From contig NC_043021.1 of assembly GCF_006345805.1 (NCBI RefSeq), positions 23,436,001 to 23,500,000 of the forward strand: DNA of 64,000 nt, written 5' to 3'. This stretch comes from Octopus sinensis (taxonomy: Eukaryota). Positions 1-9,969 of the stretch are shown here, piece after piece. A program made the translations under genes and the position numbers. Below the pieces are notes generated by a model. That model was not told the DNA's origin. It ran no database searches and saw only the letters and a list, made by a program, of their open reading frames with translations. Each line of letters begins with the position of its first letter. The stretch's first letter is position 1.

Positions 1-655
1 GAGCTCTTGTTTCTATGAGCTCTTCATTTGTGAATGTTACTATTTCTTTCTTCTGGCGAAGAATGTCTGCGAAATTTACTGATGTTGTTCATTTTTTTGT
101 ATTAACATCTTCACTATTAGATAGTTCATTTTTATTGTTGTTCTTGTTGTTGCTGTTTTTGTCAATAGTTTTCGTTTCAGTTTTATTTTTATCATTTATG
201 TTGGTCGTGGTAGTGGTGGTGGTGGTGGTGGAGGTGGTGGTGGTAGCAGTTGTTGTCTCGTGGTTGCTGTTGTTAGGGGTGGTGGTGGCGGTGGTGACAG
301 GGCTGTTAACGCACGTGGTTGCAGCGTTCATTTCACCGAATTTTACGTTTACATTTTCCGTGCGAACGTTCTTTTTTTTTCTATCGGTTCCAGACTAGGA
401 AAATGTTGTTCCATAAAAGAACGCGACCAGCGCTCAACAATAAAATTTCTAGACATTTTCTAATGTCGAGAAGAAAATTACAGAAATGAAATGGGGTCGA
501 AACTGCCCCTAGGGGCGAATTCCTCCCTTGGAAAAGCACTCAAACGAAAGTTGGTTGCCTGACACACCCTATTTGCAAAAATGTACAAAAAAATTGGGCT
601 ATAAATAGTCAAAATACACAATTACCTTCGGAGCTGAACTGACATCACATCCGTC
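1..655 (-). mobile_element. Tx1/L1-clade LINE copy A, 5' end only (5'UTR plus ORF1 N-terminus; continues left of the window)
   Basis: About 95% identical by eye to 53483-54128 (copy D). ORF1 ATG at 456 (MSRNFIVERW...). The 5' end abuts (TATC)n. Confidence 0.9.
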
Positions 656-1026
656 AATAGATAGATAGATAGATAGAGAGAGAGAGAGAGAGAGAGAGAG
701 ATAGATAGATAGATAGATAGATAGATAGATAGATAGATAGATAGATAGATAGATAGATAGATAGATAGATAGATAGATAGATAGATGGATGGATGGATGG
801 ATGGATGGATAGATAGATAGATAGATAGATAGATAGATGGATAGATAGATAGATAGATAAATAGATATATAGATAGATAGATAGATAGATAGATAGATAG
901 ATAGATAGATAGATAGATAGATAGATAGATAGATAGATAGATAGATAGATAGATAGATAGATAGATAGATAGATAGATAGATAGATAGATAGATAGATAG
1001 ATAGATGGATGGATGGATAGATAGAT
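656..1026. repeat. (GATA)n tract with (GA)n and (GGAT)n variants between copies A and B
   Basis: Direct reading. Confidence 0.98.
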
Positions 1027-1334
1027 AACTTTCTTTTATTAGCCACACAGGGCTGAATACAGAGGGGACAAATACAAATGCAGAGCTTTTCTTTTCGAGG
1101 GTGGAAAAAAAAGAAAATAAATGTAAGATTGCGATCAAAAGGGATCGAGAGGAGGAAAAGAAAGGAAAAAAAAAGAAAATCGTGTATCACAGAAATAATG
1201 ATATAAACATTGATATAACAAGATTGGGTTCATCCGTGGGAAGAAAAGCCTACAGAAAAGACCACGGGAACCCCAGTCAGGGAGGAAATAACCACATGAG
1301 ATCAAAAATGCTCTCTTTCTTTCTTTTTTACGAT

Positions 1335-6984: not shown

Positions 6985-7185
6985 TTTCTAATGTCGAGAA
7001 TAAAATTACAGAAATGAAATGGGGTCGAAACTGCCCCTAGGGGCGAATTCCTCCCTTGGAAAAGCACTCAAATGAAAGTTGGGTGCCTTACACAACTTAT
7101 TCACAAAAATGTACAGAAAAATTGGGCTATAAATAGTCAAAATAAAGAATTACCTTCGGAGTCGATGAGACAACACATCCATAGA

Positions 7186-7240
7186 CAGAGATAGATAGAT
7201 AGATAGATAGATAGATAGATACATAGATGGATAGATAGAT
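7186..7240. repeat. (GATA)n tract between copies B and C
   Basis: Direct reading. Confidence 0.95.
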
Positions 7241-9969
7241 ATGTTTCTTTATTAGCCACACAGGGCTGCACACAGATAGAACAAATTACAAGGTAGAGCT
7301 TTTCTTTTGAAGGTTTAAAAAAAAAAAAAAAAAAGGAAGGGGGAGTTTCGATCAAAAGGGATCGTAAAAGGAGAGAAAGAGGACAAAAAAAGGGGGGTTA
7401 AAAAAAAGGGGAGGGGGAAAAAATTTTGATCAATAGGGATCGTTATCACAGAAATGTCAATATGAAGTGTAAAGGGGAGGACAGGTGAGGTTTACCCGTG
7501 GAAAGAAAAGCCTACGGAAAAGACCACGGTAACCTCGGTCAATGGAGTCACATGTTATATTTCTTTTTTTTTTTTTTTGCGAATAAGCAACTCTCTGTTT
7601 TCAATTTCTGGGTTCATAGGATCATGCTCAAGGTGGCTTCGTCATTCATACGTGCCATTCTTGCTACATTCACCCATCTTTTTTTAAAACATTCGCGAGA
7701 CAAAACTTGCCTCTCTACTCTCACTTTCCTTTTCAAGTGGTACTTGAAGAAGTTGATGAGAGATTGACCAGAGAGGAAAGTGTTTGTCTCCAATCCTTTC
7801 AGACGCGTCCACCAGATACATTCTTTCGCCATAGCCACAAGGATGATGAAAATAGCTCTTCCTTCCCGTTTGAAGGAAGGAGGCGTGACAATATTGACGA
7901 TAGACTCAGCTGATAAACCGACTCGTCCCACACGTGACAGCTGTTGTTCGACATAAGCCCACAGGTCGGAAATTGTTGGACACTGCACGAGTGCGTGCAG
8001 AACGGTTTCGTCGCTCTGACCGCATCTCGGGCAGGTCGGCCCCGTGTTTCTCGAGCCGTGTCTGTAGAGCTTATCCCGAACGGGTAGTGCTTCTCGGTAG
8101 CACTGCCAGGCCAGGGATCTCTGGAAGTTGTCCATGGGCCCTGGCCCGAAAGTCATCCTGAACAGGCGGGTCAGGTACTCCTCGTCGACGTCCAGGTTCG
8201 CCCCGAGCTCGTCGTCGTACCTCCCCTCCACTAAACACCTATAGAATGCTTTGGTTGTGTTGAAGTCACTCAAGGTCGACCCAGGACGGCAGAGTTGCTT
8301 GAGAGCAACGCGACACTCGCGGTGCCAATCGCCCTTCCTCGGCCTCTTTTTGATCCACGACTGCAGTTCGGTCATGGAGACGAGCTGCAGGAAAGCGTGC
8401 CTCACAAACGGCGACCACACCTGTTCACCGTCGTCTACATAGAGCCAGAGATGTCGCAGTCTCAGCGCCTTTCTGCGCATCATCAACCACGGCATGCCCA
8501 GCCCTCCTTTTAACGGGTGTTGACAGTAAATGGATCGCCTGACCATCGGGACGCATCCTTTCCACAAGAAGCGAAAGAGAATGCGTTGTAGTTTGGTGAT
8601 GGTAGGGTCGGGACAAGGTACGACGGTCAGGCGGTAGTAGATGACGGACGCGATGTACGTGTTCGCCACCTCCGCCCGACCTTTTAGGGACAGTTTCCTC
8701 TCGGCCCATTGCCGGGCGAGAGTGACCACCCTGCTCGTTATCTCGTTCCAGTTGTTCTCCACTTGGAGGTCCGGACCAAACCAGACCCCGAGCAACTCAA
8801 CCGGGCCGTCGGTCCAGCGTCCCACGACGGAGGCGCTGGTGGACGGCATGGGCTTGCTTCTCCAGGTGCCTAGTCGCAAGCCCACTGACTTTTCCCAGTT
8901 GATTTTCGCTCCTGTCACCGCTTCGTAGTTTTTCAGTGTCTCGCCGACCTGCTCGATGTGCTCGTGGCTAGACACTATGACGGTGACGTCGTCCGCGTAT
9001 GCAGACACGCTCGTCCCGCATCCCAGTTCTCGCTGGATGCCTCTCAAGGTTGCCAGCTTCCGCAATAATGGCTCGAGAGTCAATACGTATAGAAGCGACG
9101 AGAGGGGGCATCCCTGACGGACCGAACGTGCGATGTCGAAGGTTCTCGATAGATGTCCATTCACGCGAATTACCGAACGGATGCCTCTGTACAAAGCGGC
9201 TATCCAGCCGCGGAAGACGGGACCGAAGCCACCCGCTCCGAGGACCGCCTCCAAGTATCGATGGTCCACCCTATCGAAAGCTTTCGATTGATCCAAATTG
9301 ATCAGCGCCCCACCCATGCCAGGTTCGTTAACTACCTTGTCTATGATGTAGCGCATCAGGTGGAGGTTGTCATGGATGGTCCGGCCTGGCACGGCGCATG
9401 TTTGCGCCTTGTCGACCAGTTTCTCGATGACAAGCGCCAACCTCTTGGCTAGCACCTTGGCCAAAATTTTCAAGTCTGCATTAAGCAGAGTGATGGGCCT
9501 AAAGTTATCTATTACGTTTCCCTTGTTTAGATCTTTCTTCAGCAGTGTTACGGCTCCTCGGCTCACAAAACCAGGAATGCTCCCGTTTTGCTGCCAGTTG
9601 CAGTACACCGCCGCCAAGAGATCTCCAAACAAGTCTGGCATACAATTGTAAAGCTCGTAGGGTAGACCATCCAAACCCGGTGATTTGTCCCCCAAGCATT
9701 CTGCCATCGCTTCCTGCATTTCCGCCGCCGTGATGGCACCTTCGCAGCACCCTGCCTTTCTTGTCGAGAGTCGTGGTAGGCTATGTAGGTAGGCACTGAA
9801 GTCCACCCTACGTTCTTGCCCTCCACTCGTTCCGAACAGTCGGGCAAAATGCTGCTGAAAGGCCTCACACATTTTACTTGGCTCGAGCAATTCGCGCCCC
9901 TGTTCATCTACCAGGGACCGAATGGTGGCTTTGTTGCCCTGTTGCGCCTCTGCCACCCGGGCCTCTCTC
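7241..9969 (-). mobile_element. Tx1/L1-clade LINE copy C, 5'-truncated, with uninterrupted RT-CCHC frame (7614-9969)
   Basis: ORF 7614-10097 is RT (YADD) through CPRCGQSDETVLHALVQC with no stops. The truncation point fuses directly to (TATC)n, and the 3' end has AATAAA then (TATC)n. Confidence 0.95.

Follow-up and report, generated by a model that had tools for sequence, protein, structure and literature searches.

What brings retrotransposons into one particular microsatellite, always in the same orientation, and lets them accumulate there head to tail? This question is raised by a 64-kb window of the Octopus sinensis genome (contig NC_043021.1 of assembly GCF_006345805.1, positions 23,436,001 to 23,500,000), an AT-rich and extremely microsatellite-rich stretch of DNA to which all coordinates below refer unless another locus is named. 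Self-BLAST of the window delimits five related long interspersed nuclear element (LINE) copies, A to E, which lie between GATA-type tracts and are all on the minus strand. Tracts were located with Tandem Repeats Finder and protein domains with Pfam, and the sample is completed by two 22-kb loci from Argonauta and a few short contigs. On this basis we lean towards a reading in which the repeat serves as a 3' tail specific to the family, and pairing between tail and target steers integration into matching tracts.

The copies form two arrays, whose elements, tracts and X flanks are all given on the minus strand. At the left edge of the window, copy A (1-656) is represented only by its 5' untranslated region (UTR) and the start of its first open reading frame (ORF1), the rest lying beyond the edge, and its 5' end at 656 meets (TATC)n. 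This tract, (TATC)~93 with CCAT and CT interruptions (657-1027), extends to the 3' end of copy B (1028-7188), a full-length element of 6161 nt. Copy B contains an ORF1 with a CCHC knuckle (~5702-6790), an ORF2 (~4774 to 1338) that carries a frameshift and a premature stop, and a 3' UTR (1028-1337) with the terminal sequence AATAAAAGAAAGT. Within ORF2, an apurinic/apyrimidinic-type endonuclease (APE) occupies 3287-4774, and the reverse transcriptase (RT) and zf-RVT domains occupy 1617-3461. A (TATC)13 tract (7189-7241) separates the 5' end of B from the 3' end of copy C (7242-9969), which ends in AATAAAGAAACA and is 5'-truncated in the APE-RT linker; its RT/zf-RVT frame is open for 784 codons (7617-9968). 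Upstream of C, (TATC)22 with a degenerate TCTG/TCTA edge (9970-10109) adjoins a non-LINE flank, X1 (10110-12264).

The second array begins with another non-LINE flank, U (47838-48156, given without strand), on the 3' side, followed by a (TATC)38 tract (48157-48310) and the 3' end of copy D (48311-54130). Copy D is full length, with an ORF2 in at least five pieces and an ORF1 module (52089-53348) that cannot be aligned with ORF1 of B and E. A (TATC)25 tract (54131-54229) lies between the 5' end of D and the 3' end of copy E (54230-59458), from which ~670 nt present in B (B 1930-2599) are missing. The tract upstream of E (59459-59691) consists of (TATC)19, (TA)17, (CCAT)10 and (TATC)9, has a degenerate edge like the one at 10060-10109, and is bordered by X2 (59692-61837), a paralogue of X1. 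The ORFs of B, D and E are broken, and the only uninterrupted ORF2, itself partial, belongs to copy C.

The junctions between elements and repeat are precise to the nucleotide. Read on the minus strand, every copy with a 3' end terminates in ...GTGGCTAATAAA(A)GAAA-NN and runs directly into (TATC)n, with junctions of ...GGCTAATAAAAGAAAGT|TATC in B and E, ...GGCTAATAAAGAAACA|TATC in C and ...GGCTACAATAAAAAGT|TATC in D. The order is a conserved 3' module, GCCCTGTGTGGCTAATAAA, then (A)GAAA and two bases, then the repeat; AATAAA is placed 6-13 nt ahead of the tract, and a search for an A-run at the 3' ends of B, C, D and E found none. On the 5' side, A and D both read (TATC)nTAT|TGACGGATG, B reads ...TCTAT|GGATGTG, E reads (TATC)n|GACTGAC, and the truncated C reads (TATC)22T|GAGAGAGGCCCGG. 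Thus, (TATC)n meets 9/9 visible ends, with TATC always in the element's sense. Because LINE-free GATA tracts cover only ~1.4% of the non-LINE sequence in the window, this excludes a chance association. TATC is present on both flanks of 5/5 window copies and 2/3 Argonauta copies (5-7 insertions at four loci only), and with repeat on either flank, no target site duplication (TSD) can be read in the window copies. An initial annotation of this stretch had reported the shared orientation, the GATA tracts at all nine visible ends, and 3' ends that pass from AATAAA through a few nucleotides into (TATC)n without poly(A), and our reading of the junctions agrees with each of these points.

What kind of element is this? 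Pfam identifies Exo_endo_phos (E 9e-14 to 2e-17), RVT_1 and zf-RVT domains in the ORFs of the copies. Among solved structures, the endonuclease is best matched by human L1 endonuclease variants and L1 ORF2p, and the R1Bm and TRAS1 endonuclease structures were not among the matches to the APE. The RT matches human L1 ORF2p with an E value of 4e-43, compared to 5e-19 for R2. Since the best structures are of the L1 type and no R1/TRAS-type endonuclease was matched, the family is an APE- and RT-bearing LINE of the L1 superfamily. ORF1 has a CxxCxxxxHxxxxC motif in B, D and E, to which the Pfam zf-CCHC model gives a weak match (E 0.01) below the cutoff. Searching a protein collection that evidently lacks the source species returned no homologues of ORF1 and three close matches only for the APE region; among named proteins, the element's best match comes from Argonauta hians. 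The initial annotation had placed the family in the Tx1 clade, a putative assignment for which RepeatMasker-based work offers indirect support: the L1-like group that it annotates as active in Octopus vulgaris is L1-Tx1 (PMC13282606). Target-sequence preference, regarded as a frequent feature of the Tx1 clade, is present in the window copies, which lie in (TATC)n, and in a more distant relative described below, family R, which is site-specific with an 18-bp TSD; this is suggestive of the clade and does not define it. Six exact matches to the 3' motif in metagenome and genome contigs were set aside as chance matches, none being homologous to the window.

We then asked whether the elements had entered tracts that already existed, using paralogous sites for comparison: the first array without C against the second array, and a LINE-free relative of the tract beside U against the tract that holds D and E. 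Without C, the first array is collinear with the second, and in both, the end of X is followed by the degenerate TCTG/TCTA edge, some 20 pure TATC units, a distal part containing CCAT and, lastly, the element (B or E), 5' end first. Copy C therefore lies within a tract whose paralogue is unbroken. In the other comparison, a paralogue of U, called U' (35090-35413, likewise without strand), is followed by a single uninterrupted (TAGA)47 tract to 35601 and then by a GACAAACAGACAGA edge like that beside X, with no LINE. This tract with its GACAAACAGACAGACAGG edge (35414-35617, minus strand) is a LINE-free paralogue of the D/E tract and serves as an empty-site analogue. At the tract-proximal end of X, just ahead of the repeats that precede C and E, we found a motif resembling a retroposon tail, TGTGGGTA...AATAAA. 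Some four chance occurrences of this motif are expected in the whole window, and its position is suggestive of such a tail. The initial annotation had held that C abuts (TATC)n at its truncation point, which is correct, and that C's own 3' tail cannot have supplied the tract there. A tail origin is nonetheless conceivable, since the tract lies behind this tail-like remnant and could stem from the tail of an older, truncated retroposon.

How many insertions do the five copies represent? Treating them as independent was an overstatement, because they occupy two paralogous loci. Identity is 96-97% between A and D; between B and E it is 96% in the 3' 3.7 kb and 84% in the 5' 2.4 kb. The flanks X1 and X2 are 98.65% identical with a sharp outer boundary. 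We considered a simple segmental duplication of the whole array and rejected it, since the LINE pairs B-E and A-D differ by 3.7-4.1%, three times the 1.35% divergence of flank X, and Ka/Ks (the ratio of nonsynonymous to synonymous substitution rates) for B-E is 0.34 and not close to 1. CpG decay was likewise rejected as the source of the excess LINE divergence, as CpG transitions account for merely 13/118 B-E differences. Among B, C and D, Ka/Ks is 0.18-0.21; together with the unalignable ORF1 of D, this indicates that neighboring copies diverged as active lineages, and they are therefore separate insertions of different subfamilies and not tandem duplicates made in situ. We count at least three insertion events, and probably five. 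For the two loci as a whole, two histories remain: related subfamilies inserted independently into two X-(TATC)n sites, or duplication came first and gene conversion acted on the copies afterwards.

Taken together, the Ka/Ks of ~0.2, the collinearity of the arrays without C and the LINE-free 47-unit paralogue support the growth of arrays through serial insertion into the tract. These observations, along with the layout of the Argonauta copies, sustain the earlier suggestion that each insertion leaves repeat on both sides and seeds more. The comparison of B and E also has a modular aspect: 84% identity is confined to the 5' UTR and ORF1 (B 4701-7188 vs E 57101-59458), whereas ORF2 and the 3' UTR are 96% identical. 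Additionally, ORF1 of both D and A can hardly be aligned at all with its counterpart in B and E, and the family evolves in a modular fashion.

The association with TATC extends to a second cephalopod genus. An Argonauta hians locus, L020, contains two head-to-tail copies that are ~71% identical at the nucleotide level in ORF2. Their 3' junctions are GTGGCTAATAAAGAAA|(TCTA)5 and GTGGCTAATAAAGAAACA|(TATC)14, the second of which is identical to the junction of window copy C. A TATC-like tract lies upstream of each copy, and in both copies, as in all window copies, TATC is in the element's sense. In an RT tree bootstrapped with a custom neighbor-joining script, the cephalopod, window and L020 clades each receive 100% support. 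The tree and the L020 junctions together indicate that the association with the tract is old and heritable. The 5' flanks of both L020 copies have a 21-nt sequence, V, in common, which may be a decayed tail. Two further observations concern this locus. The 5' UTR of the first copy includes two to three tandem monomers (L020 4590-4900), each beginning CTGTCTGT, and a 179-bp block composed of the tract and a flanking sequence, W, follows both LINE copies with 98.9% identity (12787-12965 and 18896-19074). One candidate explanation of this duplicated block is a very long TSD accompanied by 5' transduction.

Other relatives carry a different repeat at the same position. The closest ones outside the window, at 70-71% amino acid identity in the RT, are L022 and L021, which end in ...GTGGCCAATAAA(A)GAAA-NN|(ATT)n; the individual junctions are ...GTGGCCAATAAAAGAAATC|(ATT)n at ~2026-2105 of L022 and ...GAAACG|ATTATTAC at 3868-3877 of L021. 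In the octopus window itself, long (TTA)n/(AAT)n tracts are found at 13026-13087, 17795-17973, 18248-18359 and 19870-19966, and no LINE tail lies upstream of them. A third kind of ending is found in a solitary, full-length Argonauta element, L001, which has GAAA-TCT followed by a 16-bp non-repeat TSD, ATTTTTAAAATTTGTA, with no tract. Its target is a TTTTTAAAA-type sequence and it carries one TCT(A) unit. Directly after the conserved 3' module there is, then, a family-specific simple repeat, either (TATC)n, (ATT)n or a single TCT unit, and in L001 the TSD lies outside the tail.

The 3' module is also found on a short interspersed nuclear element (SINE)-like retroposon within the window. In the copy at 41305-41500 (minus strand), the terminal 40 nt correspond to the 3' end of the LINE (TTTGTCCCCTCTGTGTTTAGCCCCTTGTGGGTAGTAAAGAA); by BLAST, the two modules are 84% identical over 38 nt. 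This copy lies within (TA)n, not TATC. Another, at 15985-16220 on the plus strand, is bounded by a unique 14-bp TSD, ATATTTTACTTGTT; a third (20240-20461, minus strand) belongs to a head-to-tail pair at 20050-20461, and a minus-strand fragment is present at 17680-17788. The SINE-like elements are all placed outside TATC, and for this reason we think that they were probably mobilized by a sister LINE family. The element has a B-box-like motif, GAGTTCAAATTCCGCC; ARAGORN and Rfam, which might have confirmed a tRNA origin, returned no match in the window, this element included.

The behavior of the (ATT)n relatives, of L001 and of the SINE-like elements outside TATC indicates that the repeat acts as a heritable, family-specific tail. 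Accommodating this, the mechanism that we favor would start from an RNA in which the conserved 3' module is followed by (UAUC)n, either as the terminus or as read-through; from the position of AATAAA 6-13 nt before the tract, we infer that transcripts run into the downstream repeat. Integration would proceed by target-primed reverse transcription: once the (GATA)n bottom strand is nicked, its 3'-OH end would pair with the terminal UAUC repeats and prime cDNA synthesis. Because of this pairing step, new copies would enter existing (TATC)n with TATC always in the element's sense. Usable tracts would include the tails of earlier copies, the tails of truncated remnants and ordinary microsatellites. 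Each insertion would split a tract and leave repeat on both sides, so that later insertions could stack head to tail. The main determinant of target choice, we infer, is the pairing of RNA with target and not base-specific recognition by the APE.

The strongest competitor gives the opposite answer, namely that the APE itself reads (GATA)n in a sequence- and strand-specific manner and that the 3' repeat is target and not tail, as the initial annotation had proposed and as has been suggested for Kibi and Koshi. We regard this as clearly less likely. It would account for TATC on both flanks of every copy, including E and the 5'-truncated C, neither of which has a LINE upstream, and also for the existence of a LINE-free paralogous tract and the fixed phase of the junctions. 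In the literature, moreover, LINE target choice is ascribed mainly to the endonuclease (PMC4494074). Protein-determined specificity also exists in the wider lineage: family R (P0164, ENA ERZ21867824, L009-L018), a LINE 42% identical to the window family, enters one position of a short interspersed repeat and makes an 18-bp TSD, GTTAAGTTAACTCCAGCC. Its copies are 99% identical and thus young, and its head-to-tail arrays are perfect, successive copies being separated by the TSD alone; for our own reading too, family R is a precedent within the lineage for arrays built via a regenerated target. However, an endonuclease that reads GATA is difficult to reconcile with relatives only ~30% diverged in protein that have (ATT)n instead, with L001, which entered its target with a normal TSD and a single TCT(A) unit, or with SINE-like elements that share the 3' module and enter non-TATC sites. 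A change of terminal repeat is also a simpler switch than the re-engineering of an endonuclease. Equally tentative is the broader proposal that an octopod APE has read (GATA)n strand-specifically since the Octopus-Argonauta split and that the family may be both a major source and a major occupier of the highly abundant GATA microsatellites in cephalopods.

A second alternative accepts (TATC)n as a mere 3' tail and derives the arrays from unequal crossing-over or segmental duplication between tails. The paralogy of the two loci, with nearly identical X flanks and the same order of A/D then B/E, fits this idea, as do the tail-like repeats of the relatives and the tail-like motif in which X terminates. 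We nevertheless consider it improbable, because adjacent copies differ by 15-50% with a Ka/Ks of ~0.2, so that their divergence took place in active lineages and did not arise at the locus. The ORF1 module of D differs from that of its neighbor, the 5'-truncated C is present in only one of the paralogues, and the adjacent Argonauta copies are just 71% identical. Passive co-occurrence, in which LINEs and GATA microsatellites simply pile up in the same repeat-rich, low-recombination region, could draw on the abundance of microsatellites in the window and on its several LINE-free GATA tracts, but it is effectively refuted by nine of nine ends that meet the tract to the nucleotide in one orientation and by the same junction in another genus.

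Several points weigh against the pairing-guided reading or limit its reach. First, sequence alone cannot separate it from guidance by the endonuclease, as either would be consistent with the constant GAAA-NN-TATC junction; both mechanisms could also operate together. Second, GATA tracts at 25702-25832, 33890-33983, 35003-35050, 35414-35601 and 47688-47832 contain no LINE, so targeting is not saturating. Third, a 21-nt flank, V, and a 160-nt flank, W, recur around both L020 copies; the target could have been a repeated composite, or the TSD could be long and accompanied by 5' transduction. Fourth, B/E and A/D may be the product of one duplication and subsequent gene conversion, which would bring the independent events in the window down to three. 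Finally, the sample is tiny: the window contributes 3-5 insertions and Argonauta 2.

Some other features of the window adjoin the arrays or their tracts. The U repeat, ~320 bp long, occurs at 35090-35413 and 47838-48156, with a partial inverted copy at ~33984-34040. GATA/TATC tracts lie directly against each copy, and on both sides of the two full ones; U may be another tract-dwelling element or part of a higher-order repeat. Flank X contains a mariner-like transposase remnant (~10245-10915, minus strand, and the paralogous stretch of 59692-61837), in which the motifs WVHHYDSE, PYSPNLTPSDFHLF and GGHVEK are spread over several frames; Pfam gave no confirmation of it. Elsewhere, a 166-bp unit is repeated 3.1 times in tandem with a 92% match (32759-33272) next to a (CA)n tract.

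How does this family compare with known systems? Microsatellite-associated LINEs are already established, and the family does not represent a new kind of element. In the Tx1 clade, Kibi inserts into (TC)n, Koshi into (TTC)n and crocodilian families into (TTCC)n/(TTTC)n (Kojima & Fujiwara 2004; PMC4494074), and Kojima applied a criterion of >20% of flanks for microsatellite specificity (PMC4494074). Waldo in (ACAY)n, Mino in (AC)n and Dong in (TAA)n provide further cases (PMC3812793). With Kibi, Koshi and the crocodilian families, the window family shares an APE, an L1-like ORF2, microsatellite on both flanks, a fixed orientation and the absence of poly(A). It differs in its repeat, a mixed purine/pyrimidine tetranucleotide (TATC/GATA), and in its cephalopod host. 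In contrast to Kibi and Koshi, its relatives carry (ATT)n or no repeat, which points to tail-guided targeting. Waldo and Mino (R1 clade) and Dong (R4 clade) are likewise LINEs within a specific microsatellite, but they belong to other clades, and Dong/R4 elements have a restriction-like endonuclease in place of the APE. Tx1L, which resides in Tx1D of Xenopus, and family R have a related ORF2 architecture (~1150 aa) and form arrays via a regenerated target; their target, however, is unique and lies within another repeat, with a defined TSD, whereas that of the window family is a simple repeat. Our literature search, which did not extend to Repbase or Dfam entries, found neither a (GATA)n/(TATC)n-associated LINE nor a description of this behavior in the cephalopod family.

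Two further groups invite comparison. Stringent-type LINEs such as UnaL2, CR1 and L2 end in short 3' tandem repeats and have SINE partners with a common 3' tail; Kajikawa and Okada (2002) are cited on such LINEs in PMC4494074. The window family resembles them in its conserved 3' module with a family-specific repeat, its SINE-like partner and, in one relative, a TSD outside the tail. Stringent LINEs insert more or less anywhere, whereas the window copies are always inside the same repeat, in tracts of 13-93 units. Human L1 and Alu insert into older poly(A) tails; here too the tail sequence is the same as the preferred priming site, and copies nest head to tail as a result. L1 ORF2p is also the closest solved structure, although identity is low and the tail of human L1 is poly(A) and not (TATC)n.

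If confirmed genome-wide, these findings would add the TATC/GATA tetranucleotide and a new phylum to the few microsatellite-homing LINEs. Sister families with (TATC)n, (ATT)n or no tail exist within 30-40% protein divergence, and they offer a natural comparison for an old question, namely whether the endonuclease or template pairing selects the target in site-specific LINEs. Should the APE turn out to read GATA after all, it would be the first example of a LINE endonuclease with specificity for a mixed purine/pyrimidine tetranucleotide. The pattern, if confirmed, would also connect LINE tails with how microsatellites arise and expand in cephalopod genomes, which are unusually rich in repeats.

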